Source: Pocillopora damicornis
Taxonomy: Eukaryota
Assembly: GCF_003704095.1 (NCBI RefSeq)
Contig: NW_020844919.1
Location: 62,001 to 125,346, forward strand
Reading direction: 5' to 3'
Length of the DNA stretch: 63,346 nt
Below the pieces are notes generated by a model, which worked only from the letters and a program-made list of their open reading frames with translations, had not been told where the DNA came from and ran no database searches. Below, one piece after another: positions 5,792 to 56,384 of this stretch; position 1 is the first letter of the stretch, and the number at the start of each line of letters is the position of its first letter. The translations under genes and the position numbers were made by a program.

Positions 5792-6546
5792 NNNNNNNNN
5801 NNNNNNNNNNNNNNNNNNNNNNNNNNNNNNNNNNNNNNNNNNNNNNNNNNNNNNNNNNNNNNNNNNNNNNNNNNNNNNNNNNNNNNNNNNNGGGGGGGGA
5901 CACATCGCCTGTAAATTCGCGAACCAATAATTACACTTAGTTCGTCTCCCCCCCACACATACACAAAGAGAACCACGTTTATTTTTTTTAATTTCTCTTC
6001 ATGTTGCTTCTTATAATTGTCCTAAAAGACATTTAGATCCATGATTTTGTAAAATGTAGTAAAAAAGGGCAGACAATGTCTGCCAAATATGTCAATGAAA
6101 CTGGTGGCACGAACTCGAGTTTGAAAAATCTGTCATTTCTGTGTCATTAAGGTATGGGCAGTAAAAAAATAGAAATTATATAAGAGTATTATATTTGCTG
6201 TTCTTGAATGATGTTTAGTGTGGCCAGTGCTATTCATTGTAACAGATTTCAGTAAATCTGTTGAATAATTATTTGAGTAAGAATGAATCAGATATAAACA
6301 TCACTGTTTAATTATATTTTTATATTATGCTTGCTATTAAGTCGTGATTGCGACTGAGAAATACTTATCTGCGATATTAGGCGCTCTCTTTTTGATCGCG
6401 AACGAGTAGCGACTCATGAATCCGACAGTCGGTGAAACGAAGAAAAACAATGCATGATACGATTTCTCAATCTTAGTAGGCTGGTTACTCGTGTGTCACA
6501 ACGACTCGCAACTTGAACTTTATCTAGATCAAGCCAGTTGGACTTT

Positions 6547-10803: not shown

Positions 10804-11562
10804 GTAAGATGGAAATTATTTTTCAGCAGTAATGAAAAACCACTGTGGTTTTCATTCATTCTCTTAGTTAACACGGGGCTTTGGTAAGGCATCCCGAAAC
10901 TTGAATTTAAACGTAAATATTACATCAGTCTTGTAATTTGGAAAAGATATGGAATATACAGACCAACTTAAATTACAATTTGATGTTGAAAATCACTTGT
11001 TATATTTACGTGTGAGTTTGATACATTTGTTGTAATGGCATTGGATAATTTTTTTTAGGTTTTGTTCACGGTTCGCGAATTTTATATTGTACTAAAAATT
11101 AACATTTCGATTTGCTCACTCACCTGAAACAGATTCACTATCACGCACATTTTACACTGAGTTTGATTTAATGAAATAATAACTGATATATTTAAAAAGC
11201 GTTGGCTGAAAACTTCAGCATTAAAATTAATCTGTGATTTACCCCTTTTTCTTATCCTTTAATAGATACTATAACCGAAAATATCTCATTTCTACGCAGA
11301 GCAAATGCAAAAACTGTCGTTCAAATGTGGGAGGTCAGATAGTGAAAGTTCAAAAGTGTTTTTGGTAATTGTTAAGATTTGAAGACCAGAGTGAGCGAGG
11401 CGAAAATATTTTTGATTAGTCAGTTATTTAATCTACTGTAAGGTGAAATCAGAATTATTGATTAAGTATGATGCCAATTTCTCTTGACTCAGCAATATTT
11501 ATATTAGCATAAGAACTTACAATCGCAACAATCTATTTATACTTTTCTTCATTATGTTTCAG

Positions 11563-12003
11563 GCGTTTTGGGCAGTTTTTACGCTCCTCTATTTGGCCCA
11601 AATGATCAACTCAGCTCCTTGCGGAGTGACGTTAGTTACACCAAGAAAAGTCGTGGAAAGAGTTTCCAGGTCTGGTTGGTTACTGGTGCGAGGAAATTCA
11701 TGGGAGGATTTTAGGAAAAGTTTGAATATTCGGCCTCGCCAGAGGAGAGGCATTAATCAAAGAAAATCCCGTCACTGTAATTGGACTGACGAGCTTGACG
11801 AGAACGTAAATAGAAAGCCAAGATTTTTACACAAAGCAGTACTAGGGTGCAAAAGTTGCTCTTCGTTTTGCAAGCCCGTGGAGTTTGATCATAAGGTACT
11901 TGTTAAAGATTGTAACGCCAGTCTAAGAACTCACAGAGAGAGAATGGACGTCTGGAAATGGGAGACAGTGACACTACCAGTGGCGTTTGTGTACAATCCT
12001 TAA
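11563..12003 (+). CDS. Secreted IL-17/Trunk-like cystine-knot-superfamily protein 1, exon 2 (153 aa spliced)
   Basis: Signal peptide, APCG, basic RPRQRR, then CNW..DE..NRKPRFL.KA...CKSCSSFCKPV....KVL...C...WKWE...PVAFVY. The CxW-x6-R-x-P-x2-L-x2-A-x-C pattern resembles the IL-17 core. Three paralogs occur in this window. Confidence 0.8.
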   Translation, partial: AFWAVFTLLYLAQMINSAPCGVTLVTPRKVVERVSRSGWLLVRGNSWEDFRKSLNIRPRQRRGINQRKSRHCNWTDELDENVNRKPRFLHKAVLGCKSCSSFCKPVEFDHKVLVKDCNASLRTHRERMDVWKWETVTLPVAFVYNP

Positions 12004-16799: not shown

Positions 16800-17240
16800 A
16801 TTCCTGGCTTGCTGGCCTCTTTTGTTATTACATTACTGGCAGGGCCATTGCCACAACCATGTGGTAAAAAAATGTACCCTAAAAAGGTGCTGCGACGTAT
16901 ACTGAAGGAGAAACGCTTTATGATCATGGAAAACGCCATGGCTGAGGCAGACGAATCAGGCCTTAAGATACCGCTACTAAGAAAAACACGCTCTGCCTCG
17001 CCCATAATGCAGGGGGCATCTCCCTGTCAATGGCAATGGCGGTCTACAGACCGACCAAGTGAAATTCCAAGGTTTTTAAGAGAGGCACATTGTCCAAACT
17101 GCGACCATTACTGTACCGCCATAAAGTACACAGTTAAAGTTTTGGTCCAAGATAAGTGCGACCCAAAAAGCGGCTTACCAATCTGGCGATGGAAGGAACG
17201 TGAAATAAAAGTTGGGTACTTTTACAAGGGAAGCAGATAA
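16800..17240 (+). CDS. Secreted IL-17/Trunk-like cystine-knot-superfamily protein 2, exon 2 (154 aa spliced)
   Basis: Acceptor cctcacag at 16799. Signal peptide, QPCG, furin-type RKTR, then SPCQWQW..DRPSEIPRFLREAHCPNCDHYC..KYTVKVL...KCD..WRWKE..VGYFY. Confidence 0.82.
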   Translation: MPGLLASFVITLLAGPLPQPCGKKMYPKKVLRRILKEKRFMIMENAMAEADESGLKIPLLRKTRSASPIMQGASPCQWQWRSTDRPSEIPRFLREAHCPNCDHYCTAIKYTVKVLVQDKCDPKSGLPIWRWKEREIKVGYFYKGSR

Positions 17241-19339: not shown

Positions 19340-20181
19340 CTACTCCAGAGCTTTGATCTCCTCGACAGCTTTCCTCAACGACTTAATGCATATCACAAGC
19401 TCCTCTTTCGTTTCCAATCGTTGCAGGCCCAGACCTAAAAGCTTATTCAATGCGTCCATAAGGCGTGCTTTCAAAACAGCATTACCGTTGCTCCCTTGAT
19501 TTCCTCTCATCGCGCCATAAGGGTTGTCGCCGACGCTCTGTGTCATCGGTGCACTACAGTTGGAAACGTCCACATTAGTAGAGAAGGGGTAGGTATTGAG
19601 CTGAACTGTTCCCCCACGAATTTCTGCATTGGCAGCTTGCGTGGCTTGACAGCTCTGAAAACTCCTGTCTGGAAGAAGAGAGGACATACCTTGCTGTTGC
19701 TTCCCTGTATATTCTTGCACATCTACTTTTTCCGCAAGTAAAGGAGTGAACGTTTTCTGAATCTTCGTCGTTATCGGACCCTCTTCGGAAGCAGAAAGAG
19801 GTCCTGTGGAAGCATCGAGCCGGGTGGTTGTCAAAGTAACCGTTTCGTTTGCACCAAGGTGGTTCCTACTTTGCTCCAGACGTGAAGATTTCACAAACGG
19901 CGCAGAGCTGGTTGGTGAAACAAGAGGATGTCCCCTCTTCTGTTGATCAGTTGGATAGGTGTAAGTCCTGAGCCTCAATGGAGACGAGAATTCATTTGCT
20001 GATGCTGTGCGATTGACAGCTGTCTTTCCACCTACAAATCCACAAAAGTTTTTCTATTTTCAACTTTTATAAACGTAACTTAGTTTGTTAGAGCTAAAGT
20101 AAGAATATTATTTTCTGCTTTTAAGGGGCTCTACAATAATTATCAGTACGGCGGAGGGCGNNNNNNNNNNNNNNNNNNNNN

Positions 20182-20223
<42 letters not shown>

Positions 20224-21497
20224 AGCTGCTGAAAAGCTGACTGAAGGATTCAAATACCCAACTATCTTACTAAAATGATATTCATTACTTTTTGGGACTG
20301 ATTTGATATGAATAAACATAGTGTATATGCATAAAAATTTAACAAAGAGCTAACAGTAATTAATAATTGTTTTGAAGCAGTTTTTAAGGTCCTCAATCAG
20401 ATGGCCATAAGTTAACATGGTGCCCCCCTCTTTATACCACCCCCCCTCCCCCCCCACCCCCTTCTCCTGATAATTATTGCACAGTCCCTAATCGGTCAGA
20501 AATGGGCGGAAATTTCAAGTTTTTAACACAGTTTTGAGGGCATTACAGAAAGCAACCCTGCTTACATGTCGAACTATTTTAACACGCTAATAAAAAATTC
20601 AAATTTCGAAACCAAGAAACAAACATTTCTTTATTCCGACAGGAAATAACTTCGTGGTCATTAGATTTTCCCTTTTTGCATGACGTTGTTTAAAAATTGA
20701 TGAACCCACTTTTATGTGCTGTGTCCTTTTCTTTCTTAGCTACGAATTCTTCAATTTTAAATTTCCTGAGGTTTCCGTATATCAAATCGTTGCCTTTACG
20801 CAGGGCCCACCAAGGCAGCTAACAACAGTTGCGAATTCATTACCAATGTGGCTACTCAGTTTGAAATAGATTATCATCACTTTAATCAGGACCTTTGATA
20901 GGCATTCCTGTTTAACATGCATATATACTTAAACTACATCGTAGTCTTGCAAATTCAATTCTTTCATATTTCAATTCGAATAACTTTCATAGAGTAAGAC
21001 TTTACAAAATGATGCTTTAAATCACCTTTTAAGTCGCTACTATTCACCGAAGAACAGCTGTCGATGTGATGAGGTGCGCTCATTTTCCTTACATTCTTGG
21101 AGGGAGAGGAGTTTGGTGTGACAAGGTCATTCCTTTCGTCATCGGTAACAACTCTTCTTTTCCAATGCTGGCTCTTGTCCAAGGTGTTGCTGTCCGCCAT
21201 CTGAGACGCCACGAACTCTTTAAGTTTTTCTTCCATGCAAAAGGGTATGCAGCAGTAAACGTCATCGCACGATTCAGCGTGTTTTTTAGCGAGGTTTTTC
21301 ATGCGTTGGCACACCTGGCACTGGGTCTTTTTGCAGCCCTGTGTGTGTTTCATCGTCAACTTCATGTTCACACAATGTGGAAGTGGACACTCGGGGTTCC
21401 AACAATTTAAAGTGTGTTCTAGAAGTTCTAGGGAACTTTTAAACCGTCCTTGTACGGCAGCTGCATCTTTTGTGTTTGTGGTTTCCTGTCCTGCCAT
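19340..21497 (-). CDS. Stand-alone TAZ2-type zinc finger protein 1 (CBP/p300-like fragment, no HAT), 2 coding exons, 387 aa
   Basis: Exons 21497-21026 and 20031-19340 join in frame across a phase-1 GT-AG intron. Three complete HCCC sites (HTLNC..C..C, HTQGCKK..C..C, HAESC..C.IPFC) resemble CBP TAZ2 (HACQC, HTKGCKR, HAKHC..CPVPFC). The C-terminal helical motif is shared with the three paralogs. Confidence 0.85.
20125..20488. mobile_element. PIF/Harbinger (Tourist)-like MITE in the intron of TAZ gene 1
   Basis: TAA-ggggctctacaataattatcag ... ctgataattattgcacagtccc-TAA; contains poly-G/poly-C tracts and a small gap. Confidence 0.7.
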
Positions 21498-23224
21498 TAT
21501 GACGTAACTCGCGACGATCTAGAAAAGCCAAATCCATTGTGAGTTATTGAGGTCCCCTAAGTTTCATATTTTTTCGGATACGTCTGATTTCCCTTGATGT
21601 TCGTGATTGTTGCCCCTAAATCTACCAATGAATCAGCTTATCCAATTTCAAATAAAGAAATAAATAAGCAAATAAGTGGATCAATACATAGCATTAAGCG
21701 TGTTAGCGTCTGATCACTCGTTGACAAAAAAAAGCCGCTTGCAACCTATCTATAAAGGTTTTCGTCAACAACTTACAAGTCAGTTTCCGGTCGAATCTCA
21801 AAACATTTCTCAGAAACATCATCATCTTATTCGACACAACGCAAACCTTACGGACATGTTTCCCATGCTAGAAATAGATTGACGCTTATCGGAAAGAAGA
21901 ATTTCTTGAAAGACTTTCTTTTCAAAGCGAAAATATCTTTATGTAGTAGAAACGTAGTTATTTCCTACCTAGAAGATGACTATATTTACAAATATTTCTG
22001 ACAAAGCTAAACCGCTGTCTCATGAACTATACTTCCACAGTTTGGCTAGCTAGAGTTTAACTTTGAGACTCCCGACAAGGATTTGTAGTTTTTCACAAAC
22101 GAAAATGAGCTAGGAAAGTATAAACTTTCAAATTACCGGAAACAATTATCGCTTCCAAGAAGGAACCTAGACCATAAAATGCTTTTAAAGTTAAAACAGA
22201 ATTTCTTTACGACTCTGCAAAAGACACAAGATCGTGTTTGAGGTACCTCCCGTCACTAACATTTTTTATTTGTAAGGCTACGGTCTAAAGCCAGGAAAAA
22301 AAAACTAGAAGTTATAATATTCGTGGTGACTGTGAATAAGTTGACAACTGCGTGGGATTTGTAGTGTATTGTTATTCATGCCTGGTTTAAAACAATGGCT
22401 CGCTCGCTCGCTCAAGACACGCAATTCTTGTTTGCCAATTTTAAAAATTAAAACAGATTCAGCTACCATTTTCGAACATACACCCATACAGCACGCCCAA
22501 GAACATCGTCCGTCTCAAGTAATATCCACCCCGCCCCTTTGAGCTTGGAGCAGCACGTAACAATTACACGTAGGAGGTCGATCGGATACTTGAAATTTAA
22601 AATCGTTCAATCGAAAAAAGACTTGAATATCACCGAACTATCGATCCTCTTGCTTTAAGCGTCGAATTTCAAAGCATTCTTCACCATCGAAGCTGGATCT
22701 ATATGAACTATCTTTTGATCACGAGAGCGAGTTAACGAGCTCAATAAGTCTAAGAGGGTATCTGCACTGCCGGAGAGAAAATTTTCTCTTAACCAGACGT
22801 AATCGACGCATGAGATCGTCACGATCATGCAATATTTGTCAAGTGAGATTATTTTACAGATCTGAGGTAGATTTACCCCACGGCGATCAAATTCGGACGT
22901 TTGCCAGCCCGGGCTAAGATGTAAACAACCGTTGTTTTTTAGCGCGAGCTAAACAAGCCAGCACATGATACCCGCAAAAAGTTGCAAGCAGTAGGGTTAA
23001 ATAATTTTTCACTGAATAAGAGCCCAGTTGCAATCACAGTTAAAGCGAAACGAAGATAGATAATAAGGTATTACAAGGCACTGAGAGATGTGAAGACAGG
23101 CTTACCTTCTGATTGCTGATATCAAACTCCAAATTTGGCAAACGGGAATACACACCTTTAGGATGAATGTTACCTGCTCGAGAAACTGAAGAAAGACCAC
23201 TCGTTCAGCGTTTGTAAGCTTTTT

Positions 23225-23335
23225 TTTTATAGGCACCCTCTCTTATTGTTGAGGCATATAGCGATATCTGGTTGTTAAAAATGCGGAATTTTCGAATGAG
23301 CAATTCCGAGCAATTTACTTCCGGGGTATGACTCA
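23225..23335 (-). promoter_or_regulatory. Candidate promoter of TAZ gene 1 (TATA, kB-like, ETS, AP-1)
   Basis: Minus-strand TATAAAA at 23231-23225; GGAATTTTC at 23285; ACTTCCGG at 23317; TGACTCA at 23329-23335. Minus-strand donors near 23172 and 23105 and an acceptor at about 21519, just before the ATG, imply a non-coding first exon. Confidence 0.45.
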
Positions 23336-25994
23336 CACGCACCAACCGGTTCCGTTTTACAGAGACTGACCTTAAATTTTAAAATGTCGAACTTCCATTG
23401 TCTAAATATATGAAAGAATATGGTTAAAATCCTGGTTTCTTGGTCCACTCACATCAACCTCTTATTTCCACAGTGCCACTATCCGAAATTGATTCAGAAT
23501 GCAGGTAGATTTCGTTGCATGACGATTCTATAACAAGCCCACAAAATTAATTGCGTGGGTGTATACTTTTCTTATAGTCATAGATGTTTCAGATATCTAA
23601 GCTTTTGTTGTTATGAATCTTACCCTTATTATGCTCTGAGGAAGGGCTTCGCCGGGTAATAAGTTTGTTATTATCTACTCTTCCATGAACCCACGGTCTT
23701 TCCGAACTCCATATAGTTTCGGAACTGATCTGGTTTCTCCGTAACTTACACCAATTTCCTTTGTCCCCGGGAGGTTGGATAAATTGGATCTCGACTGTTA
23801 TTGTAATGGTTGCTGCGGGGCGTTTACACGTGCCTCACATCCTTTGCCAGTCCTATCGCGTGAAGCAGTCAGGCTGAAAGCTGCAACGAAAATGTAACGT
23901 AATTCGTTACAGTTTTCCCTTAAGAAAAGGAAAATACAATCTAAGAATTTATGCTAGGTAAAGACCAACGAAAGCCGAGTAGGCCTACTCTTTTTATCTG
24001 TTTTAAATCAATTCTTTTTCTGGTCTGATTCACTAAACTCAAGTTACTACTTCAACTGAAATACTAACCCTTCCGAATGGTGCGTGGTTTGAGCCGAAGC
24101 TAACGTGACAGGGATGACTAAATATAACCAAAATTCGCCCACAGGAAGTGAATTTAGTTTCATCTTTAGATGATAAAACCTGTTCGCAACCTATAACTTG
24201 CTTTTTGCAAGGGTAATTTCAATATTTACGCTAAGAAATTTTTTCGTTCAAAAGCTTATGTTTGTTTTGTTTGTTTTTTTTGCGGGAATTTTTTCAAATG
24301 GGATAAATGCAGATGCTGGTGACGCGTCACTTGTCGATACAAATTAGGTTGAGCCGGGTCGGATGCGTCTAGAAAAATAAAGTGAAGTGTTTTTGTGGTT
24401 CTCGAGAGCCAATTAACGTAAGACGTGAAATTAAGTTTTCTTTAAACAGAAGTTCACACCCTAACTAGAGTAAAACAGCTAACCAACGAAATTGATTCCA
24501 TCAATTCACCTCCAATATTTTTTCCTTTAGAACGCTACTGAAAGCGAAGTCATCATGGCACGGCTGAAAGGCCGTGCAACTCTAATATTTAGCCAACTGC
24601 TGGGCAATCATGCAATATTGACTTTTGGCATGGAACGGTCGAGTCACTGTTCTTCCCTTGTTACGTATTGGGATAATAGTGAAAACTTTGTAACCGAACA
24701 AATGGAGCACAACGGTTTCCAATCTACCGTCTGCGATCGATCTACTCAAATATTTCGTATGCTTGGCCTCCTTTTTTTTTTTTTCTGGGCTTACTGTCGC
24801 CCCTTTGCAGTTTTTGCCGAATCACTGAACCAATATTGTACATTTTCCTCCAAACTGGTAATGTTTGCAAATATAAAGCTAGTCGAAATTTTGTGACGCA
24901 AATGTGTAGCTCCTAAAGTCCGGAAAAGAGGGTGGCTTGCAAGTTCGTTTTCTTACCCGCCCAATATCTTTCACCTTGGCATTCTCCTTCTTCACCTAGT
25001 GCTAGAGCTGCGCCCCTCTTGTTAGAACCGAAGTTTTGCCCTTGAAACAAACAAAGGGAAAAAAAATATTCTATGTCGTTCCATACACCATTCTGCATGA
25101 CAAGAAAATGATTTTATCAGTCTGCGATTGAAACGGTCGGGCGATATTGAACGTATTTGCTGATGCTTTGTCAATTATTAAATGAATAAATAGCGCGGCC
25201 GTAAATTAGCAGCTAAATACTAGTCTACTGAAACTGAAATCTGCTTCAAATTTTTACTCAGTGATGCAGTTAATTGTAACCGTTGTTCGCTTTTCTAAGG
25301 TAAGATCACGTAAAAGAACTATTCAGTCTTACAACTTCACTGGGTCAAAGAAGGAAAGAGCTGGATTTGATCTACCTTCTTAAAACAAAACCCTGAACCT
25401 TGTCTGCTTTATCCATTCTTTACTTTTAAAGAATAACCTTCGATCGAAAATACGCCCCAATTGAATTACCATAATAACTCAGTGAAATCTTCCTCTAAAT
25501 CTAATTTAGTAAAATACGTGACTGAAATGCAAATTATTTATGGTCTGGTGGGTGTTGTCATGGGAGTGAGCTTTGATGTACTTCCCCAGCGCAAGCGACA
25601 TTCGTTTGAGATTCTTTTAACCTGACTGAACATTTACAACAATTAGGTCAACGATTTTTCCGATTTATCCTCTTTTTGATGGCTTTCTTTACTTTTTAAC
25701 GATAACTGGCGGCAAGAGAAAATCAAGGGATTTTTTCTTAGTAGCGGTCCAATTCGAAATTATTAAACCCAAAAGACACAGACGGACATTTCGGATGTCG
25801 GAGAATACTTTCATAGTAGGCAGGGCACGGGATCAAAATTACTACCAAAAGTAGCGACAAGAAGGTCATTAATATTATTCAGTTTGAATTATCCCTTGGA
25901 AAGACTTTGATCTTCGCTATATTTTGAGGTACGTGTCGTGAGTAAAAAAGGAAAAAATGCACTAGAAAGGAGTTCCCAACTGAGGACGCCTTAA

Positions 25995-26600
25995 AATCTC
26001 AGCTTCTCGTCATCCCCGGTCACTTGAACTACTCTAGGGCTACGCCTTGGGCTTGGAGCCATGACATCATTAATAATAAATGGAATAGGAGTCACCTCTG
26101 CTGAATCCGTGAACGACAAACTCTCTCTGATTTCGCCAACTTTTCCTTTAATTCTTAAATGGATCCAACAGAAAACAAGGAAAATATATATTTTGATACC
26201 ACTATTGCAATATTTTCGCGGTGTCTTCACAGACCAAGGGTAGACTGCATAATTCCTCGTAATAATAACTCGTAAGCGGGTTAAGATTTCCAACTCTGGC
26301 ACTCTTTATGTTTCTGGACCATCTAAGTCTTAGTCATAGCATGTCGTTTTACTCTGATGATTCTCAATCGGTGAAGAACTAATACAACAAATCTCATCTT
26401 CCCATCATCCCAGGTCACTTCAACTATCCAAAGGCTACGCCCTTGCTGCATCCGTGAACGATAAACTCCCTGATTTCGATTACTTTTCCTTTAATTCTTG
26501 AATGGATCAAACAAAAAACAAGAAAAGTATATATGTTTAAAACCACTATTGTAATATTTTCACAGTAATTTCACAGATGAAAGGTAGACTGCATAATTCC
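25995..26600. repeat. Diverged local direct duplication (about 25995-26256 and 26389-26600)
   Basis: Shared blocks ggtcactt.aacta, atccgtgaacga.aaactc, acttttcctttaattctt.aatggatc, accactattg.aatattttc and ggtagactgcataattcc; the second copy has a deletion of about 45 bp. Confidence 0.85.
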
Positions 26601-26640
26601 AATTTTTGTCTTGTCCCTCCGATTACACGGGTTAAATACA

Positions 26641-26784
26641 AGGGGGAGGGGTAGGGGGAGGGGGAGGGGTATGTTAAGAACATTACAGAGCCTTGTGGAG
26701 GGATCAGGTGAATTATATTGTGTTACAATTAAAATTCTCCAACTCCAATCCTCCCCTCCTAGGCGATAAATAACAAACGGTTCC
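26641..26784. mobile_element. Partial copy of the 17981-18303 MITE family, immediately 3' of TAZ gene 2
   Basis: Shared aagaacattaca.agccttg..gggatcaggt block and cccctcc..ggcgataaata end. Confidence 0.55.
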
Positions 26785-26798
26785 GCTCCATCGTGCCT

Positions 26799-27920
26799 TT
26801 ATACTTGCGTCCCCAGAAATACTTTGGTTTCGTGTAAAACGTCTGTTAGTAACCGAATGCACATCTGCTGTTCCTCCGTGGACTTTGTTTGCATCAGCAG
26901 GCGTTGAATACTGTATAGCGCATACATTAGGCGTGCTTTCATCTGAGTTCTGGTATTACCAGTATCATTGTCAGCTCCATTATCTACGTTAAAATTCCTC
27001 TTTTGCGGTGTATTACCGGAAGTTCCAGGTTCTTGAGGAAAAGGAGGACTTGTCTCTGAATGTATTCTCTGGCGCTGTACTGCATTGTCGATTTGGCTTG
27101 TCTGCAGAAGCGCGGCATTCTGGCCTTGCCCAAGAGTAAACGGATACGGGACGTCGTTACCAACACTGTTGTTCGGAGCTGACGCTTTAGCCCAAGCATT
27201 TATTGTTGTATCCTGTGAGTACGGCGAAGAGCCAGTGGCAGTGGGCGGTGTTGTTAAGGTGCCTGCTGAGGATACTGGAAAAAGCTCCATTAAAGCACGA
27301 CGCGTTAAGCCTGTCATACCATTGGCTGCGTTTACACTGGATTGATCTTTACGTTGTAAAAGACAAGACTGAGGAGCCAGATGTGCAGGCGAACAGGTCG
27401 TTTGAACCGAGCTTGAATGGTTAATCAATACGTTTAATGGTTGAACGGTTGGGTTGACTTTCATCGCGTCTTTCGCGTTTTTTAAGTAAGGAGGAGGTGC
27501 TGGGGTTGATTTTGCCAGTCTCTGAGTCACTTTACTCCTCACTCCTTGAGGTCTTGATATCTCAGAACTATCTCTTTGTTCGAATGAAAACTCTAGGGGA
27601 AAATTGTCTTTGATTACATCCCCTAGGTGATCATTCAAGTCAGTTTGGGCTCCTTTGTAAGGGTTGTCATTTGCACCCATGCGAAAAGGTATTAGGCACT
27701 TGGGTTCAATACAGGATCCAGCAGGTTCTATAGTTAGGGTTTTCAACGTTTGAGAAACTTTGCAGGCATTAACAGTTTGAAATCCCTGCGAATTTTTTAG
27801 CTGTAAAAGTTTCTTATTTACGCATATCGGAATGATACATGCGGAATCTGAGCAATTTAAGGCGTGCTGTTGTAACCCTTGCGAATTATGGAGTATTCTC
27901 TTTGGTTCTGGTTCTGCCAT
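26799..27920 (-). CDS. TAZ-family protein 2 with degenerate zinc finger (373 aa from the likely ATG)
   Basis: Part of the 415-aa ORF. An acceptor (cacag) at about 27954 precedes MAEPEPK at 27920. The first HCCC site is intact (HALNCSDSACIIPIC), sites 2-3 are decayed; C-terminal MKARLMYAL motif parallels LKARLMDAL of paralog 1. Confidence 0.8.
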   Translation of the reverse strand: MAEPEPKRILHNSQGLQQHALNCSDSACIIPICVNKKLLQLKNSQGFQTVNACKVSQTLKTLTIEPAGSCIEPKCLIPFRMGANDNPYKGAQTDLNDHLGDVIKDNFPLEFSFEQRDSSEISRPQGVRSKVTQRLAKSTPAPPPYLKNAKDAMKVNPTVQPLNVLINHSSSVQTTCSPAHLAPQSCLLQRKDQSSVNAANGMTGLTRRALMELFPVSSAGTLTTPPTATGSSPYSQDTTINAWAKASAPNNSVGNDVPYPFTLGQGQNAALLQTSQIDNAVQRQRIHSETSPPFPQEPGTSGNTPQKRNFNVDNGADNDTGNTRTQMKARLMYALYSIQRLLMQTKSTEEQQMCIRLLTDVLHETKVFLGTQV

Positions 27921-30851
27921 TAGTTTAACTCGAATGTCCCTGGCGGGAAGAACCTGTGTGGTTGAAAGTAAAGATGAGAACAGATGGATGGTTTGGATTA
28001 AATACCCTTGGCGTGCACAATCCATGAATAAATCTATGTATATCACTTAGCATTCAAAGTTGCGTTCAATAAAAAAATACCGGCAGCTTGTGATATCTCC
28101 CTTTTCCGTGTTTCTTGACGAAAGGGATTCAAATTTCTCAGTTCCCTTTGCGCTGAACTCTCGCGAATATGGGGCTCTCAAGCTGAGGAATTTTATTGAC
28201 ATTCCTTAATAGATAATAAAATGATAATAGGTGGGTCGTTTGTGGCGTGAGGGTAATTATTTTTCCCTTAAGGCGGAATTTAATAGTTAATAGTTGCTAA
28301 GAATTAAAGATTGTGCTTTTAGCTTTGGCTAAAATATTTCTTTTCATATCGGACACTATTGCCACGAAGTAACAGAGTCACGGTGAAAAGGTTTGAGTCG
28401 TTTTTGTGCAACAAGTAGAAGGAAACGGTTGATCCTAATTTCCAAGGTGAAAAAGTTCTTAATTTGCAATGTTACAGGCACACTTAGGGTTGCTGTTTCC
28501 ATAGCTTCTCCCAACTTCAAAGATACTCGCTAAAGCGTGAGGCCGAGGAAAGAGGCCGCAGAAATTTTTCCCTCTCGTCATTTGTTTTCACTCATTTTTA
28601 TTCGTGGCTTGGAGCCCATACTTATCTCTCATCTTTTCAAGCTTCATTTTGCAATTCTACTTGAGTGCGAATATGAGTCATGTTTACCTTTAAGGCGATT
28701 TGAGTTTACTGACTTTCCAGATTATCAGAAGATGCTATTTCGTTGCATGTTAAGCGATTAAAGCTTACAACCAGAGGTAAAAAATTGAATTGCTTTGCCA
28801 ACCTTTTTCAGGTTACGCATTTGCGATTTAACAGAAATGAAAATTGTTTTATTCACCCAGCACCCATAGAGGGCTGTCCTTAATAAATATACTTGTTTCA
28901 AAATTATTCATATCACAAAAATTACACCTCTTCAGTTGTTTTCAAATCATAATTCTAAGTGTCAAGCTACTTTCTCCCTGCAAGAGTCCACTATTTAAAA
29001 TTTCGATAAACGTACTTTTGGGATGCATTTGAAAATGCATCGTCTCTTGGGCAGTCATATCTACCACAAGAATTAACTTCATTCTATGAAGTAATCGGTA
29101 GCACCCAAGGATATTAAGGTGAAAATTTAGCATTGATCAAAATCTCACCTGTTCTGCAGCTCAGTTCTTTTACTGCAAAACTGTTCTTCCTTACTTGTGG
29201 TAATTTCTCCCCAAAATAAAGCGTGTGAAATTGTTACTGATTGTTCGGTTATTTAACCTAGTCGAAAGATAACAATTTCCTGTGTGGGTTGGATAGCGAA
29301 ATGTACCAGATAGTTCTACCTTGGAATTTTTCCCACCGTGACCACCCACGCTTTTGGTATCAGACCGGCCGATGTGTTTCCAAGTTAAATATTTATTTTA
29401 GACGAGGACTTTTCAACCATTTCATTTCATTTATAAACTCTTTTCTCCATGAAAATACAACAGTACAAAAGGGCACTTAGAAAAAAAGAAAAAAGAAAAG
29501 GTTGGATAGATAAAGGTAACTCCTTGTTCGTTATTTTCTTCTCCCACTGTATTGAGGTTATTTGCAAAACCGTGCGATGGGTCTCTCGATGTCACGGTCT
29601 GTCTAACATGCACGTATGTATGAATATAGTGAAGACAAATTCGCGTAACTGGAGTAACTTATAAAAAATCTTAAATATTAGGCCGCAGATAATAAACATT
29701 AGGATCAGTTCTGCTAAAAAAAAGTTTAAAATACTTTTAATTTTTGTCTTTTATTTGCATTCCCCCGCATTCCTAAAGTTTTCTAGAATTTTAGTTTACT
29801 TTTAAAGGTGACCCAAAGAGGTCATGTTAAAATATCTCAGTACCCAGTAATTAAATGGGTCAACAACTCAGGCTATATCATAAAATTATTTTAATTTTAA
29901 ACATAGGCAGGACCAATTAGCAATCGGACCAAGTTCGACTCATCTAAATTGTTTTAATTGTAAACAAAGGCAGGACTCACTTTTAATCGGACCACGCAGG
30001 ACTTTATCTGAAACTGCAAGAGTTGTTTATCTGATTTTAAGGAAAAGCACTTTCAATTTTTGTGTTAAAAGACACTAATTTATAATTAATACTAATTTAG
30101 TTCAAACATCATATGAAACGTTTCACTTCAGCTTTACTTCAACGCTTCTCCTTATTCTTATATAAACCAAATTGTTAATGGACACCTTTTTCTCCTACAA
30201 TCCCTCTGTGAAGATTCAAGTTTCTGGACAAATCCCAAAACAATTGTGAACGTGATAATCTTTTCCTATTATCTGCAATAAAGTTTATCATAGAATCTCA
30301 TTTTTTACATTTTTGTAGTGCCTTCGACTGCCCGTCACCAACCGGATAAATTATTCGTGAATAGATTCCCTTTGTGACCTTGCGGGCGTAAGAGTATTTG
30401 TTAGACTTAATATGCTATTTTTTTTTGTTATGGCGTTTGTTTAGACTGAATTTTTTTAGGGAATGCTGCACGGTTATTTTATGGAAATTCTACGGTTAAG
30501 ATTGGTATCAGGGAAAAGTGAAGGTATTTTAAAGAGTGATGTCTCTGAAAAACTCGAAATTGCGTAACTTTTGGCTCCCTAAACTGAAGTAGGAAACGCG
30601 AACACCTCCACCGTAACCCCACGGTGTCCAGCCTTTCCGCCATTGGCCTACGCTTTTTTTACCACGTAAAGCCCCTGGGTGGATGGTAAAAAATTCATTC
30701 ACTTGACGGACCCCATCAAAGTTGAGTGGTCAAAATTTAGGCACTCGAAAAATTAATTAAAAAGAAACCTTGACTACGTCTCAAACTGGCTTGCACAGTC
30801 TGAAGACGTCAGTGAAAGGTATTCTCATTTCTTAGTTGATTTTAATATATT

Positions 30852-31177
30852 CGCTTAAGAGAGAATGTTTTTACAACAAACAGGAAACAATTTGTGGCGA
30901 GATATAGACAACATCCTGAAGTGACCGATACAAGCTTGTGTTCACAGTCAGGAAACGTAGTTTANNNNNNNNNNNNNNNNNNNNNNNNNNNNNNNNNNNN
31001 NNNNNNNNNNNNNNNNNNNNNNNNNNNNNNNNNNNNNNNNNNNNNNNNNNNNNNNNNNNNNNNNCGCTTAAGAGAGAATGTTTTTACAACAAACAGGAAA
31101 CAATTTGTGGCGAGATATGGACAACATCCTGAAGTGACCGATACAAGCTTGTGTTCGCAGTCAGGAAACGTAGTTTA
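30852..31177. repeat. Near-identical 113-bp duplication flanking a 100-N gap (probable assembly/haplotype overlap)
   Basis: 30852-30964 is repeated at 31065-31177 with two substitutions, directly on each side of the gap. Confidence 0.85.
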
Positions 31178-33030
31178 CGTGACACTACAGAGAGCGGTAG
31201 AAGACGTGGATGGAACTGGGCGAATATAACACTCGAATGACGAGGGATATGCAAATTAGTGGATCACCATTTTGAAACCCCATTTCATTCAAGAGGTTTT
31301 CTTGTTTCATTTCATTACTTACTTGCTGAGACCAGAAAGTTGTAAATTTTGCTATATTTGTATATCACAATTTTCCACTTCTTCCCAATAAATTAATAGT
31401 GAACAGGCTGTATTATTGCCTAAACGATTGAATGCTTTTAAAAATGACTGGCTTTAATAACCTTACCGAGGGACTGTGACCGACTATATGACTGGCTATA
31501 AATTCCCTAACAGGAACTATGACTGGCTAAATGAATCTACGGCTAAACTATAACATGACGAAGTACTTAGAAACTGTATGCGTTGCCACTCTTCCCTGTT
31601 TTTTTAGCGATGGGTCTTTTCAATCTGACATGTGATATTAAGTTCGTCCCCCTTGGCTAGTACGTAAAATCTGAGAGTTTGCGTGGGTGTCAATTCTGAG
31701 AAATACTGCGCCGTCTAGTAATTATTTTTAGGCTGAGTGTCAATAATTATGAGATTGACTGTTGCATCTGCCAAAATGTCTAAAAAAATGTCTTCTTCTC
31801 TTACATTCCTACGAACTATTTTAACACGAACTTATACAGAGCGTGAAAACGACCACGAACTTAGCCATTACGACTTTCTGTGCGAATTCCCACTAGAATG
31901 TCGGCACGAGCTACCGTTTAAACACATTCTGCTAATTCGGGCTGTAACAGTCACTTTGTGATGAACTGTTTCTCCTCGTGAAAATGGCAATAGATTTCCG
32001 CGCAATTTTCTTTTGCCCTCAGAGGTTTTTAAATCTTGGTGGCCTTTGACTTATAAAACTGAGTGTTTTCAACTTGTGAAATCAGCGTTCACCTTGGAGC
32101 AGTTCTCTCCGAAATGTTCACAAATTGGTGCGCTACATGAGTAAATTTTTAAATGTTCCACGAGTCTCTAACTTCGCAAGACTAATCACAAAAACAAATT
32201 CTCTCGTATATATAAAGACTTTCATGAAAACTCCCCCATATCACCGAAGGCGAGCTGCCCCTGCGACGTATCCCTAAGATTTGTTCTGGGAGTAAAGCAC
32301 ATGGAACGACTGGTCACTCAATTTGTCAAGTGTGCGAACGCCGCGTGTGTGTTCTTATTCACGCACGGTATGAACAGGCCTTTATGGAACGTGAAAGAAT
32401 GGGAACCCAAGCGTGGTTCTCCCCTCAGGTTATCCTTTTCATTGTAATTTACAAACGGCTTTTCGATAAAATCACTTAAGTTCTCACCTATGAAAATAAC
32501 TGATGCAACCTTAGAATTGCAAAGTTCAGCCCACTGGTAACAAGTAGAATTTTCTATCAAGGTGAGCTTCAAACACTTTATTATTAATTTTACTTAAAAT
32601 GGCACACTCTGAACACAAAGTTATGGTTATAATAATTTGAACCTTTGCGATATTTGGATTGCACCAAAAAATTGGTGTACAATGATTCTTTTATAAAAAG
32701 AAACGCTTATCAAACTAAAAAAAAGCACACTCTGGAAAGGTTAGCAAGGCTGTCCCAAAATTTTAGAGACCAGGAAAACACTCAACTGGTTTCAGTTAAA
32801 TTTTTAGACACCTTATCAAGAAAAATACTCTTACGCAGTGTCCTTATTTGAATCGTGACTTCCACCTGTGACCGAAAATAACGGAGAAGACCTTATCGTT
32901 CTTATCAAAACTTTTGATAAGAACAGTTACAGTTACTCGGCAAAACAGCATTGGACAATGTGAAATGAGTCAAAAAAGTTCAAATGAAAAGATGAGAGGC
33001 TCCGACTATTGAGAGTCAGTATTCAAGACT

Positions 33031-34479
33031 TTACCACTTTGCTATCTCTGTTTTCATCATACCAAGAGTCCGTTCAAGCAAATCAACAAACACAGCTTCT
33101 TGTTTCTCTGTTTTGGGCTGAGTTACAACTCCGAACAGTTGAAATAACGTTTCCAAGAGGACAACCTTCAATGCTGAGGAATTTTCTTTAGATCCAGCGT
33201 TCTCTCCCAGCCACATTTCAAATGTTGGAGATGGTGGTGGTGTGGAGAACATCTCTTCGAGAAAATCATCCACTAAATCATTATTTACTTTACCTTCATC
33301 CTGACAGGCCTGATGAAAATCAGTCTGAGAGGAATCCGAGAAGGTGAACCGACTCTTTGCAGAAACTTTTGAATACTGCACTCCTGCTGTAGGCTTAAAA
33401 GAAGGGACTTTCTTTGGTAAGGTATTTCTTTTGGTGAAGTGGCACTGGTGTGTCATTGAGCCCGCTTTTTCATCCTGTTTCTTGGCGGCAATCCTCAAAG
33501 GTACTCGTGGTGAGAACATGGCTTTGCTGGACTTCTCCTTACAACGGTTGGTGTCGTTCGGCGGGGCCGTTCCTTTAAGTTGGTTAGCTAGTCGCCCAGA
33601 TGATTTTATTCCTATTATTTCGATCTCAGGACTATCATCTTGCTGTGATTTAAGACCAGTAGAGGCACCTCGAATAACTTTAGTCGGTGGAGAAGCCGAT
33701 TCACCAGTAGAGACGGTGATGGCCTCGCATTTCCTTTTAGGGGCTGGTCGAGGTTGGTTCGTAACTGAAAAAATATCCGCTTTGGATGGTAACCGTTTCA
33801 ACGTACAGGTTGGGATGTAGTTTCCATGCAAACTCTCATGGAGGCCAGACTGAGGGTGTTTTGGTTTTTGTACGGTTGACGAACGTTTTCTCAAATCTGG
33901 CAGGATCGGCTCCACTGAGTCAGGGACCTGAGTTGAATTTTCGGTTGCAAGTTGAAAGTAACTTGCCTCTGACAATGGCGCCTGTGTGGCCGGAGTGTTC
34001 CTACTGGGTCCATTGTTGAGTTCAACCAGTGTTGATGTTTCACTGTTTCTAACTGCCATGCAGTGAGAATCACTATGCATTCTGGAAGCTTCCTCTCGTC
34101 TACATTCCTCTTTTGCATCTTGCGAAGGATGAATGGCTTCACCATCTTCTTGGCTGTCCAGTCCTGCATCGAACACTTTCCCTAATTCATCCATGAGTAC
34201 CTGTTGTTGTGCCGTCACTTTGGCTTCCATGCAAAATGGCACACGGCAGTAATAGTCTCTACAGGAATTGGAATGACTTGAGGCGAGAGACTTGATCCCC
34301 TGACAAATTGTACAGTTGTCTACCTTTTTACAGCCTTGCGCGTGCCGCAAAGTTAGTTTTAAGTTAACACAGAGAGGTAAAAGGCAGTTAGGGTCGACAC
34401 AATCCAGTGCATGTGGAAGAAAATTTTGTAGTTCTTCGTGCCAAGCTTGTCCGGACATCGCCTCGTAACGGGAAGCCAT
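33031..34479 (-). CDS. Stand-alone TAZ2-type zinc finger protein 3 (CBP/p300-like fragment, no HAT), 482 aa
   Basis: Single long ORF with three intact HCCC sites (HALDC..C..C, HAQGCKK..C..C, HSNSC..CRVPFC), an S/P/Q-rich linker and the shared C-terminal helical motif; acceptor at about 34509. Confidence 0.9.
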   Translation of the reverse strand: MASRYEAMSGQAWHEELQNFLPHALDCVDPNCLLPLCVNLKLTLRHAQGCKKVDNCTICQGIKSLASSHSNSCRDYYCRVPFCMEAKVTAQQQVLMDELGKVFDAGLDSQEDGEAIHPSQDAKEECRREEASRMHSDSHCMAVRNSETSTLVELNNGPSRNTPATQAPLSEASYFQLATENSTQVPDSVEPILPDLRKRSSTVQKPKHPQSGLHESLHGNYIPTCTLKRLPSKADIFSVTNQPRPAPKRKCEAITVSTGESASPPTKVIRGASTGLKSQQDDSPEIEIIGIKSSGRLANQLKGTAPPNDTNRCKEKSSKAMFSPRVPLRIAAKKQDEKAGSMTHQCHFTKRNTLPKKVPSFKPTAGVQYSKVSAKSRFTFSDSSQTDFHQACQDEGKVNNDLVDDFLEEMFSTPPPSPTFEMWLGENAGSKENSSALKVVLLETLFQLFGVVTQPKTEKQEAVFVDLLERTLGMMKTEIAKW

Positions 34480-34610
34480 TTGTATCAGCTTCTTGAAAGA
34501 GAGTCTTCTGAAGGAAAAAAATCCAGATAAGAAATACCATTATCAGTGATGATGTAAACGAGCAGAAATAGACACATTGAACATGTGATTATCAGCTGTA
34601 CGATTATGCG

Positions 34611-34620
34611 GGGTTTTCCC
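34611..34620 (-). promoter_or_regulatory. NF-kB-type site 5' of TAZ gene 3 CDS
   Basis: GGGAAAACCC on the minus strand, about 130 bp upstream of the ATG (promoter or first intron). Confidence 0.4.
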
Positions 34621-37600
34621 ATAATTAGCGTACACGGGCGTGATGCAGTAACGCATGACTACCTAAGGAAGTTTTAACTTTGTCAACAATCTGTTGTGAT
34701 TAAAAGGACTTGATGATAAATTTGCTTGGCAACCATAATAATGGCAGATGTTGACTCATTTCATTTTGATTGACTGTTTTGAAAGAGAATTGAGAAAACA
34801 TTGTCTCAAAATACAAAAGATAATTTTTTTTGTCTTAAAATATAGCGTCCATAAACGCCTCTCATTCCTTCATGTTATTGCCTCAGCTGACCCGTTAGTA
34901 AGACCAATGGAAGCCATCGTCAAATCATATAAAGAACAGGCTTTCGCAATTGTTAAGAAACGAAATTTGCCATCTAAATCTTACTGACGCTCGATATTGA
35001 TGTCAACAATTATACGTAATACATAAAAGTCGGGGATTTGTAGAATATCTGACACTTTATAGAGATCGTTTATAAAGGGTTCTTTCCCATCCGGGTGGAA
35101 ACATTTACTCAAATGTCAGAAACCGAAGGAAGAGGTTGTGTAAAAGTTAAAGACAAATCTATCCGGCTAAAATTAAAAGTGTTGCGACAGCATGGGCGGT
35201 GGAAACCACAAATTGATAATTTCTTAAGATGGTTGTCAACTGTGACATCAGATCGCTTTTGATCACGATTTTGCCTTGGGGTCATCGATAAGCTGTTTTT
35301 TACGGTTTCAACAAATTAAACACAAAGGAAAAAAATGAAAGTAGTCGAAGAAATGAAAACAAAAGATCGATGGTTCATGAAAGTATACTAGACATTGCAA
35401 ATGGAATGTGCAAAATCATCGTCGGATATCAGTATTCGTAACTTTAAAGTTCCGCATACCTTCCCTAAGTGATGCTTCTACTTAACAAAGCCGAAACCTT
35501 TGAAATATATTTTCCAAAATCACGTTAGAGATATAATTTGAGAAGCTCTCGTATTATCTCTAGAGCTTCTTTTTGATCTTTCGTGAACACATCTACACAT
35601 ACAGTATGCCTCGATGGTAAGCGGATTGTTAAGAACCCTTTGCTATGTGTCCGAACAATCACACCACGTTCTCTGGAGGTTCTGGAAGGGAAACTGACTG
35701 TTTTACCTGTATTAAAATGAATAATTTTACGATGTATCGGTAGCGCTCAAAATTACTGCAGACCAAGTTACGATACTACTCTTTTTCTTACTGCGATACA
35801 CGAACGTCTCGCTGGATTTTGCCGGAGCTTGATGAACCCTGACGCAATTGAACCGTTACATTTGAGTCGTTCGGTTGTGAAGCTTATGGTAAAGAAGTAT
35901 TCATTACGTTATCGAAAACTATGGCCGATTAAGCGAAGGAAAAGTCCAACTGTCAGATCAACAATATTCGTCTAATAACTGTTTGCAGTTTATTTGAGAT
36001 AGATTATACAGACTGCTCAAGTTTTGATAGTATACAAGACTGTACTGTTATGATATTGGATCTCAGTTTTCTATAGAACACCAATATCTACTGTAACATA
36101 TTCATTTAACTTTTCTGTCGCGATGTTCTCAAATAGGATTTTTTCCTACTTGGAATGATTTGTTTGTTTGTTTCCCGTTTTTAATAACCTGAGCCCTAAA
36201 CTCTCAGACCAACAGACTCTTGATAAAATAAACTTTATGATTTATAGTTCGTGCAAATCAACCAAGAGCTGTGCGGATAAAATTTACCTTAAGGCCGGCT
36301 GTTGCAGAGTAAACGAGTGAATTGCCAACGACTTGAAGGAAAATATTTTTTCCAGTAGTACTCCAGAAAAGCTAATTCAAACAGCAGGAGTTTTTTCTTC
36401 ACTTGGACAACGGTATAACAGAATTTACGATACTCACCTTCCGTTTCTTGAATTGACAATTGAGTCCAATCGTCCCAAACGGACTGACTTGTTGCCGTGT
36501 CAATGAGCAAGTTCAAGTGAGAGTTTCTATACCGGCCTCAACTAAAGTATATTAGCGTTATTATGGCTCACTTAACAATTGCAACTTAAGAACATTCCTT
36601 AAGTTGGGCGACCACAGGTGTGTCGCCGGACGACAATAATTCTTTTTTTACTTGGGGAACACCTCGAAAAGCCAGTTTTCTAGTGGAAAAGTATCATTCG
36701 CGCGTTTGAAAGAATATCTGTAAACATTTCGTCGAGAAGAGGGGCACTTTGAGTCAAAAATCGTAAAATCCATTTGCGAAGTGTTGGTCGTGACTAGCGT
36801 GACTTTAGACACTCATTCCTTGCATAATTATAGACACGAATGAGACAAGTGTTCAAGCATTTCCGGACACACCGTTAACTTCATCAAAGCGGAAAATTTT
36901 CGATGACATGAGCGTTAACTAATAACTGATTTATGTAGACTTGCACTCGCGTGCGCTAAAAAGCGATTTTCATGATTACTTTAAGTGCATAAATACTCGT
37001 TAAGTGCAGAAATACTCGTACTTCCTGTTGTTTGCCGTTCATTTTAAAATGACGACAGTGAAGGTAAAATCTTAGCTAATATTGACTTCCATGCTCAAAA
37101 TATCAGCACAGTGGACAAAAAAATCATTGTAAGTGATGTTGCGAGGTTTTTTAGATTACCGTGGTTTCACTAATAAGTCTAAGAAACATAAAATATATAA
37201 AATTAGAGTAATCCTATTCACATATGAAGTGCGAGTAAACCAAGAAAAAAAAATGAAGGCTTAAATGATACTAGAGCTAAAACAGTATTCAAACATCTCC
37301 TCTGTAACCTGCGATTGTGCTTCTCTCTACTTAAAAAGGGATAAAAATTATACCCGACAGCTTGTCGGACCACATCTAAAAAAAAATATAACTTTAAATT
37401 TCAGAAGATAATGAGAATGGTTTGTGACTTTGGATCTTCTGCGAGTATTCGACCATTCTAGTCTATTTTCCTGACATAATGATTGACAATAGAATCGTCT
37501 GAAATAAGGACAAAGGACGCTGTATAAACCACAATCATCTCAAATCGATGCACGTTACGGATCGGTAGATACTGTGACAAAGGGTCCACGATTATGACAC

Positions 37601-47600: not shown

Positions 47601-49191
47601 ATAATACAGCAGTCTTTAATTTTTTAGTCAGATTTTTGTTTCAGCATCTAACTACTTCCTTAGGATATTACATACACAAATTGTCTGGTGGAAGGCATAA
47701 GCATAATTCAGTTTGATTCTCGTTAGGATCTGAAAATACCTCAGAGTGCCAAATAAATATTCAACAATTTCACTTACTAGAAGGCTCCATTTTTCGTCAC
47801 CCAACTTTTTTGTTAGTCACCCTTTTTTTCCTTTCCTCGTTTTTTTCCCTTTTCTTCCTTTTCCGCATTGAAAATAAACCTCTTGTAATCCTGATAGGCT
47901 TTACTAGAAGACTCTCATTTCCGTGTCTGTGTTTTTCGTCCTAGAATTCCCTGTTTTTTTTTCAGTAAAACCGGCCGACTGAGAATTGACCAACCATTAA
48001 TTAATTCAAGATTAAGAAAGGGGACTGGCGAGTCAGCTCTCTATTTAGAGTTAATGGGAGCAGACTCTCAGTGTTCAAAAATATTTATAAACCACTTAGG
48101 ACCGAAAAACACGTTTCAGCATGATTCCGTCGAACCAAACTGGCTACTTAAAGCGACAAAGTCATCCGTTAGTCAAAAATTTGTCAACAGAACTAAATAT
48201 TGCAAAACTCACCGCTACAATTTATGTTAGTAGAAAACAATAAAAACACTATTAAAACATAATTAATATTACGTCTATCAAACTCAAGAAACGTTTGTAA
48301 ATCTCACCAGTTGTTGAACTTATTGGTTAGAATGAAGTGGTTTCCATAACTACTTGGACAAGTTAGACCCTTCTGTTCGTTAACGCAAGACTACTAACAC
48401 TGCATAATATTTTGATATGATAGTCCTTCATGCCCATCTTTGTAGTTCGATTTGCTGAGACAATCTTAATACTTAACATAGCGACGTTACGTCAGAGAAA
48501 GTCATGCTTCACTCAACGTTAGTCTTCCATATAGACAGCAAAAATAGTTGTTGGAACTTACGAACGAGTGAGGATTTAACTTCGTGGTATTCGAATAATC
48601 AAACCAGAATCAACCGGAAAGCGCGCTCACCATGGATACTCAAGTGCAACAAAGTTTGCGGCTGTCTATGTATTTGATGAGTTTATTTTAATTAATTGTA
48701 ATCATTGTCCGCGATTCAATGGCATAACCAAAAGTGAGACTAAAATGATAATAGGACTCGCTCTAATGGAGAGAACCTCAAATTACGACAATTTCAGGAG
48801 AAGAATCTTCATTTCGAAATCGGACTTGACTCAATTTCCACACAATGGTGTTATTACGCCGAACATTGTACTGTTCACTTTAAAGTTCATGAATAAACAA
48901 ACCTCCTCCGAGACCGGATTTCCTCTAGTGTCTCAAAAATACATCCGGCCTTGTGGGCGTCTGTTTATTCAAAGGGTTTTACTTAAATTAAATTTTTCCT
49001 TGCTGTTAAAAAGGTAATGCGGTGTTGATATGTTGTATCGGCAACTTCATACGCTTGGCATGTTTGTGGTTTTTTGTTTGTTATACTAAACAACTTCCTT
49101 TTTTAAATGCCGAGGTTTTGTTTGCCTCTGATCGCTGCTGGAATTTGTGAACACTAGCTATATTGTAATTATCATTTCTTGTATTTTTCAG

Positions 49192-55150: not shown

Positions 55151-55172
55151 TGACGCCACAAATAATATATAA
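55151..55172 (+). promoter_or_regulatory. CRE half-site and TATA box of cytokine-like gene 4
   Basis: TGACGC at 55151, TATATAA at 55166-55172, ATG at 55365. Confidence 0.45.
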
Positions 55173-56361: not shown

Positions 56362-56384
56362 TGTTTGTTTGTTTGTTTGTTTGT
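56362..56384. repeat. (TGTT)n microsatellite
   Basis: tgtttgtttgtttgtttgtttgt. Confidence 0.85.

Follow-up and report, generated by a model that had tools for sequence, protein, structure and literature searches.

A tandem gene family of stony corals combining a TAZ2-type zinc domain with an NCBD-like C-terminal module

Can docking parts of CBP/p300 exist in an animal genome as proteins of their own, free of the enzyme? CBP/p300 is a hub for many animal transcription factors, and work on its docking domains normally uses pieces excised in the laboratory. The question is raised by positions 19340–34479 of a 63,346-nt stretch of Pocillopora damicornis DNA (contig NW_020844919.1, positions 62,001–125,346 of the forward strand), which is called the window here and was analysed at its full length. 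The minus strand of the window carries four paralogous genes in tandem, designated G1 to G4, with G4 located outside the 19340–34479 stretch. G1 (coding sequence (CDS) 33031–34479) encodes 482 amino acids (aa) from a Met start in a single open reading frame (ORF). G2 (CDS 26799–27920, 373 aa) is contained in an ORF at 26799–28046, and its real start is the Met at 27920. G3 is present as two ORFs (20964–21497 and 19340–19978), with predicted exons at 21497–21026 and 20031–19340, and G4 (61224–62207) encodes 327 aa. The four genes share a common plan, i.e., an N-terminal TAZ2-type zinc domain, a disordered middle region and a conserved C-terminal two-helix module. The zinc domain is complete in G1 and G3, and only its first zinc site is left in G2 and G4. 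The reading proposed here, at a rough probability of 0.55, is that G1–G4 belong to a tandem stony-coral family with TAZ2 and NCBD-like parts that came from the tail of CBP, and that the proteins dock on CBP-recruiting activation domains without bringing the enzyme.

The domain in G1 and G3 is of the TAZ2 type and not TAZ1. An initial annotation had described both genes as starting with a Met shortly before a complete three-zinc TAZ2-like domain, and this description is borne out. The Pfam model zf-TAZ (PF02135, gathering cut-off 25 bits) matches residues 17–83 of G1 at 38.1 bits and residues 21–87 of the first G3 ORF (20964–21497) at 42.9 bits. In G1 the domain spans residues 17–88 (34216–34431) and has 12 of 12 zinc ligands (H23, C27, C32 and C37; H46, C50, C56 and C59; H69, C73, C78 and C83), together with the motifs HxxGCK and CxxPFC. 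These 12 ligands are invariant in an alignment of G1, G3, the TAZ-complete relatives and CBP fragments. A sequence search of the PDB with G1 gives 15 significant matches, all of them p300 or CBP TAZ2, either alone or inside larger p300/CBP constructs, and the best is p300 TAZ2 (E 7e-14). An AlphaFold 2 (AF2) model of G3 exon 1, made from a diverse alignment, has a confidence (predicted local distance difference test, pLDDT) of 91–95 over residues 20–100. The first nine Foldseek matches to this model are TAZ2 structures with probability 1.00, and TAZ1 structures appear at E above 1.

The genes of this cluster are genes of their own and are distinct from the single CBP gene. Pfam analysis of the G1–G4 ORFs yields zf-TAZ as the sole match, in G1 and G3; HAT_KAT11 is absent, KIX, bromodomain, ZZ and TAZ1 give no match at E up to 1, and zf-TAZ itself is not matched in G2 and G4. 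The genome searched comprises 234 Mb in 4393 contigs. A single CBP locus on contig C2761 holds its only HAT_KAT11, KIX, TAZ1 and NCBD matches, and the exon for CBP TAZ2 is found on the same contig. No HAT, KIX, TAZ1 or NCBD match is present on C1554, the contig of the window. The earlier view of these proteins as stand-alone forms lacking a catalytic part is thus upheld by both the ORF contents and the confinement of CBP exons to C2761. The last exon of coral CBP is one open frame of 745 codons that encodes the end of ZZ, TAZ2, a Q-rich stretch, NCBD and a Q-rich tail. In a tree that includes coral CBP TAZ2, the TAZ domains of the family group together as a single clade (support 100/100), outside coral and vertebrate-type CBP TAZ2. 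A long branch separates the family from CBP TAZ2, and the longest terminal branch is that of G2.

Both G1 and G2 give spliced transcripts, and the two genes have one structure: a non-coding exon, an intron of 1.2–1.9 kb whose acceptor is some 30 nt ahead of the ATG, and a single coding exon. In G1 the non-coding first exon is at 36438–36666 (5' end approximate), the 5' untranslated region (UTR) intron of 1930 nt is at 34508–36437 (GT..AG), and the coding exon at 32562–34507 includes about 465 nt of 3'UTR. The first exon is defined by L007, an mRNA-like contig of a related coral (79% protein identity) that aligns with 36666–36434 and then with 34498–32566, and by a joint in RNA run X1 that goes from 34507 to 36438, skips 1930 nt and ends CT..AC on the plus strand. 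PolyA RNA runs from four studies yield contigs that extend from 32562 or 32616 to 34507 or 34509, with a depth of 41–119 on the coding exon versus 7–14 over the intron. The splice sites are AAG/GTGAGT (donor) and TTCCTTCAG/AAG (acceptor), where the slash marks the exon boundary. In G2 a non-coding first exon (29149–29210, 5' end open) is followed by a 5'UTR intron of 1195 nt (27954–29148, GT..AG; donor CAG/GTGAGA) and a coding exon (26135–27953) in which TAZ2 is decayed and the C-terminal module is kept. Five Logan contigs join 29210–29149 directly to 27953 onward, and each carries the exact 373-aa G2 product. The spliced 5'UTR of G1 has in-frame stops ahead of the ATG, and in G2 stops are located 15 codons before it. 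Both messages therefore begin with a non-coding exon of their own and have stops upstream of the ATG, in line with the initial annotation, which had expected no upstream HAT exons; neither is spliced to a full-length CBP.

Beyond the zinc domain, the proteins are not disordered throughout, and the first description of them as TAZ2 followed by an S/P/T/Q-rich disordered remainder is only partly correct. No secondary structure is predicted for the middle region of G1, and its pLDDT in AF2 is low, as had been supposed. Its content of S, P, T and Q is 34%, however, which is only a moderate bias. The linker bears basic patches, e.g., PKRK, that resemble nuclear localisation signals. The AF2 model of full-length G1 with 31 orthologs is poor, with a mean pLDDT of 41 and the TAZ domain unfolded. 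What the first description lacked is an acidic-hydrophobic motif with S/T-P sites (residues 401–426, 33202–33279) and a two-helix module, probably derived from NCBD, at the C-terminus (residues 430–482, 33034–33192). The motif is acidic and has two hydrophobic-x-x-hydrophobic-hydrophobic elements as well as the S/T-P sites; AF2 gives short helices at 403–410 and 420–423, and columns T413–P418, F420, M422 and W423 show little or no variation among the 31 orthologs. By sequence it resembles an activation domain and might bind CBP, the TAZ2 of its own protein, or neither. A complex prediction of G1 TAZ2 (residues 8–100, three Zn) with G1 residues 395–482 gave a score of 0.01 and a mark of 0.34, and counts neither way. 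The module is predicted by AF2 as helices at 433–450 and 458–481 with a pLDDT of 65–79, and it is common to G1–G4.

The module probably descends from the NCBD of CBP. A BLAST comparison of G1 with the CBP last exon finds TAZ2 (E 1e-10) and, collinear with it, a match of G1 residues 427–475 to NCBD (E 0.019). The only hit of the family hidden Markov model (HMMER) falls on the NCBD core (P 0.018), and MAFFT alignment of full-length sequences places NCBD on the module in the same register. Comparison of the module with a five-sequence NCBD profile by hhalign gives P 0.0054 over 35 columns. The score of 17.2 is not reached by any of 300 column shuffles (mean 7.8, maximum 13.4), although this control is lenient because shuffling columns destroys helical periodicity.

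Sequence comparisons between corals show that both end domains of G1 are under purifying selection. The ratio of non-synonymous to synonymous substitution rates (dN/dS) between G1 and its ortholog L007 is 0.32 overall; TAZ2 has 0.09, the linker 0.45 and the stretch of the C-terminal 87 codons 0.11. The values for G2 and its ortholog P0046 from another genus are 0.27 in TAZ2, 0.59 in the linker and 0.32 in the C-terminal region. With transcription of G1 and G2 and these low ratios in the G1 domains, the cluster does not fit the alternative named at the outset of untranscribed ORFs with a dN/dS near 1.

The family is known so far only from stony corals. A word search finds 44 G1-type proteins, and a HMMER search with a profile built from the last 70 residues finds 28 clusters at 50% identity, with lengths of 85–580 aa and the match always at the very C-terminus. 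These 28 clusters sort into G1-, G2-, G3- and G4-like types plus a few more. The search with the module profile, made against a large representative set, returned family members only and no CBP; it shows the narrow range of the family, and the same search cannot show a link to NCBD. The named relatives are without exception proteins of stony corals, annotated as uncharacterized or hypothetical, and come from Porites lutea, Oculina patagonica, Desmophyllum pertusum, Orbicella faveolata or Stylophora pistillata. These genera cover both major coral clades. Relatives with 98–100% nucleotide identity are reef metagenome scaffolds. The clustering is also found elsewhere: in another genus all four paralog types are on one 281-kb contig, and in Desmophyllum the locus tags of family members are near neighbours. 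The P. damicornis genome has at least three more members at other loci, two on contig C147 (1682–2800 and about 54750–55780) and one on contig C3161 (398–1171), listed as L025–L027. All three are of the reduced type, with the first zinc site (H..C...DC.LP.C[VI]N.K) and the C-terminal module. A search of the literature on TAZ, TAZ2 and zf-TAZ in corals and cnidarians found no description of this family. The papers covered describe neither this architecture nor the probable retention of NCBD, and they mention neither a first-site-only subclass nor a family confined to stony corals; the TAZ2 domain itself is of a known kind.

The zinc domain is reduced in two of the four window genes. In G2 the first zinc site is intact, the second lacks three of four ligands and the third lacks two of four, so that 7 of 12 are kept, and G4 keeps the first site only. 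The G2 ortholog P0046 retains 12 of 12 ligands. At G2 codon 49 (27774–27776), the histidine ligand of the second site is N in the window and H in the related sequences L008 and P0045, and the decay of the second site is therefore recent or polymorphic within the genus. G4-type orthologs with the same reduction at the zinc sites are found in several genera, including Stylophora and Desmophyllum; the first-site-only form is therefore a conserved one and not a product of decay. Half of the family members are reduced to the first zinc site, and TAZ2 therefore cannot be the whole function of the family.

G3 also has both a TAZ domain and a C-terminal module, but it is not the one-ORF gene that it was first taken for, as its C-terminal half is in another frame behind a predicted GT-AG intron. 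The two ORFs are in different frames and the TAZ ORF stops at 20964. Predicted coding exon 1 (21026–21497) has 157 codons plus 1 nt, with the complete TAZ2 at 21237–21437; the predicted phase-1 intron (GT..AG) is at 20032–21025, and predicted coding exon 2 (19340–20031) encodes the linker and the C-terminal module. The donor AAAAG/GTGATT (exon end 21026) and the acceptor TTTGTAG/GT (exon start 20031) have compatible phases, and these splice sites are conserved in a related contig. Each of the two exons was compared on its own with P0048, a G3-type protein of 400 aa encoded by one ORF. Exon 1 aligns to P0048 residues 9–108, and exon 2 aligns from its third residue to residues 157–393 (E 1e-31); the two parts of G3 therefore abut without loss. 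The same split layout is present in every genomic contig fetched, and 215 blocks of the indexed collection contain the exact G3 TAZ ORF. A transposon insertion was considered for the spacer of about 1 kb and rejected, as the spacer is unique in the genome.

Neither of the two assembly gaps within 19340–34479 touches coding sequence. One of them (20161–20181, 21 N) is inside the predicted G3 intron. It is crossed in collinear order by three contigs from related corals, in which the flank coordinates are 33 nt apart, as against 33 positions in the window. A homopolymer of about 40 G (C on the gene strand) at 20182–20221 is directly beside this gap and is its likely cause. The other gap (30965–31064, 100 N) is intergenic between G1 and G2. 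Its flanks (30852–30964 and 31065–31177) repeat the same 113 nt with 111 of 113 identical, and on the related contig L008, which has the stretch once, their map positions overlap. The gap is therefore probably an unmerged assembly overlap.

In the proposed mechanism, the family would have arisen from a partial duplicate of the CBP terminal exon, in which TAZ2 and NCBD are encoded in the same order. The duplicate may then have diverged fast and been duplicated in tandem. The proteins would dock on the acidic activation domains through which transcription factors normally recruit CBP, probably binding these domains without acetylating anything. Having no acetyltransferase, bromodomain or KIX, they may compete with CBP as natural dominant-negatives, or they may bridge the transcription factors to other partners through the C-terminal module. 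In other animals the clients of TAZ2 include p53, STAT1, C/EBP and MEF2. A more specific proposal is that stony corals evolved a dedicated set of mini-CBPs, HAT-less and equipped with TAZ2, an NCBD-like module or both, by which CBP-dependent transcription in stress and immunity (NF-kB, IRF, STAT, p53) is tuned or blocked, that the position within an array of IL-17-like genes reflects shared regulation, and that the first-site-only forms are a second class working through the NCBD-like module; this is speculative and rather improbable as a whole. Nothing in the analysis pointed to a viral connection of the E1A type.

Several results weigh against the proposed reading. Coral CBP, at 36% identity, is not a nearer relative of the family TAZ domain than human p300 is, and with the long branch as well the proposed mode of origin is tentative. 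The link to NCBD is weak, with an HH probability of only 6.7%. The Pfam model PF09030 (Creb_binding), the sole genomic match of which is CBP, does not match any of the four C-termini even with an E limit of 10. A PDB profile search with the module gives chance-level hits only, with no NCBD chains. A function based on TAZ2 cannot hold for G2 and for G4-type proteins, in which two zinc sites are lost. Within the genus, G2 shows 5 synonymous versus 13 non-synonymous changes and G3 shows 1 versus 8, and these small counts give no clear sign of constraint. A spliced G3 product was not found; only fragments of 180–184 aa from the second exon were recovered, and all fetched contigs are unspliced. The exact G4 product is present in 11 contigs that are collinear with the genome, where RNA and DNA origin are indistinguishable, and these contigs are hence silent on the expression of G4.

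Other explanations of the locus differ in how they account for these results. The ORFs might be exons of a larger CBP-like gene, or an artefact of annotation or assembly, as could be suspected from the two gaps within the stretch and from P0001, the 515-aa database version of G1 given by gene callers. The extra 33 residues of P0001, however, are intron sequence translated across the acceptor, and many independent assemblies show the layout of the window as well. Together with the upstream stops in the spliced messages, the position of both gaps outside coding sequence and the lack of a HAT or KIX exon on C1554 this makes such an origin extremely improbable; for G1 and G2 it is refuted. Decay of some copies is a less remote explanation, though still an unlikely one. 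G2, which has lost 5 of 12 ligands, and perhaps G3, with its ORF split by about 1 kb, would be young pseudogenes that are still transcribed. The absence of a Pfam match in G2, its long branch, the ligand position that is polymorphic and a within-genus dN/dS of 0.78 on 18 changes agree with decay, as do the missing spliced product and the 1 versus 8 changes of G3. On the other hand, the G2 ORF is intact in the window, L008 and P0045, its message is spliced and polyadenylated-looking in five runs, and its C-terminal module is conserved relative to P0046. The first-site-only form of G4 is stable across genera, and the parts of G3 are open, with canonical, phase-compatible and conserved splice sites and a TAZ ORF that recurs in the 215 blocks.

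The remaining alternatives concern what the proteins are made of and what they do. The C-terminal module may be unrelated to NCBD and represent another helical hairpin, e.g., one for dimerisation or partner binding, that was joined to a copy of TAZ2. This is a serious competitor, somewhat less probable than descent from NCBD. It would explain the Pfam and PDB profile searches without NCBD, the low HH probability, the recovery of no CBP with the module profile, and the two long helices predicted by AF2 where NCBD has three short ones. It does not readily explain why three methods agree on the NCBD core, and on the register, for the best match, why none of the shuffles reaches the score, and why the order of TAZ2 and module is that of the CBP last exon. 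A different possibility, which is tentative, is that the proteins are adaptors or co-activators and not decoys. The G1 motif at 401–426 and the acidic motifs of G4-type proteins would recruit CBP or Mediator, TAZ2 and the module would select the partner, and the net effect would be activation, as with CITED proteins. The invariance of the G1 motif across the 31 orthologs, in the part of G1 with a dN/dS of 0.11, and the retention of acidic-hydrophobic stretches and the module in G4-type proteins that have lost most of TAZ2 are consistent with such a role; the non-TAZ parts therefore carry a conserved function. The label of activation domain for the motif nevertheless comes from resemblance only. 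Docking by a probably CBP-derived family that lacks the enzyme is the preferred reading.

The cluster is flanked and interleaved by four single-ORF genes on the plus strand (11554–12003, 16809–17240, 49147–49638 and 56340–56924). These encode small secreted-looking proteins with an IL-17 cysteine-knot signature (CPWxW ... R.P..L..A.C..C). Their Pfam IL17 matches are weak (E 2e-4 to 0.03), and one of the four has no match. IL-17 homologs have been reported in Cnidaria (PMC8353272). A gap of 384 N (60087–60470) is found about 750 nt downstream of the G4 stop codon. Seven metagenome scaffolds of 2.5 kb hold G4 (L033–L039), and L033, when aligned to the window, ends at 60471; this suggests repeat or hard-to-assemble sequence at 60087–60470, and the 3'UTR of G4 may run into the gap. 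Two further gaps of 100 N are at 5792–5891 and 51001–51100, outside the 19340–34479 stretch.

A natural family that keeps docking parts of CBP and drops the enzyme represents a natural experiment on TAZ2, and perhaps on NCBD, without acetylation. For coral biology it is an uncharacterised, lineage-restricted set of likely transcription modulators located beside cytokine-like genes. The stress and immune responses of corals are a practical concern.

Comparison with known systems begins with CBP/p300 itself. The coral domain shares with TAZ2 (CH3) the three HCCC zinc sites with 12 ligands, the four-helix fold, and the closest sequence and structure matches. It differs in its location 20–25 residues from the N-terminus of a protein of 370–480 aa that has no ZZ, HAT, bromodomain, KIX or TAZ1, in a loop of the second zinc site that is two residues shorter, in a family-specific CVNxKL motif, and in its low identity to coral CBP TAZ2 and separate clade. 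The C-terminal module resembles NCBD (IBiD) in its position C-terminal to TAZ2, as in the CBP last exon, and in the pattern L-x-x-L-L ... P-x-T-x-x-Q-x-A-x-[VF]-[LV]-x-[IL]-L. It is below every family threshold, however, is predicted to have two long helices, and is at the very C-terminus, whereas the NCBD of CBP is followed by a Q-rich tail. NCBD itself is a molten globule that becomes folded when it binds the activation domains of p160, IRF3 or p53. A stand-alone TAZ domain in an animal is not unique in itself, and nematodes may have small TAZ-only proteins. An ESM Atlas cluster from nematodes (162 aa, 311 members) likewise comprises short animal proteins annotated with zf-TAZ only; its feature score of 0.80 is a lead only, and it has no sign of the C-terminal module. 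The BT (BTB-TAZ) proteins of plants are a further case of a TAZ domain outside an acetyltransferase, but these have a BTB domain and a C-terminal TAZ, and Pfam finds no BTB domain in the coral proteins. CITED proteins are CBP/p300-interacting transactivators, small and non-enzymatic, that are ligands of TAZ1. They have no sequence relationship to the coral proteins, which carry the docking domain themselves. In principle, however, the two would be alike in that both control the access of transcription factors to the docking domains of CBP/p300.

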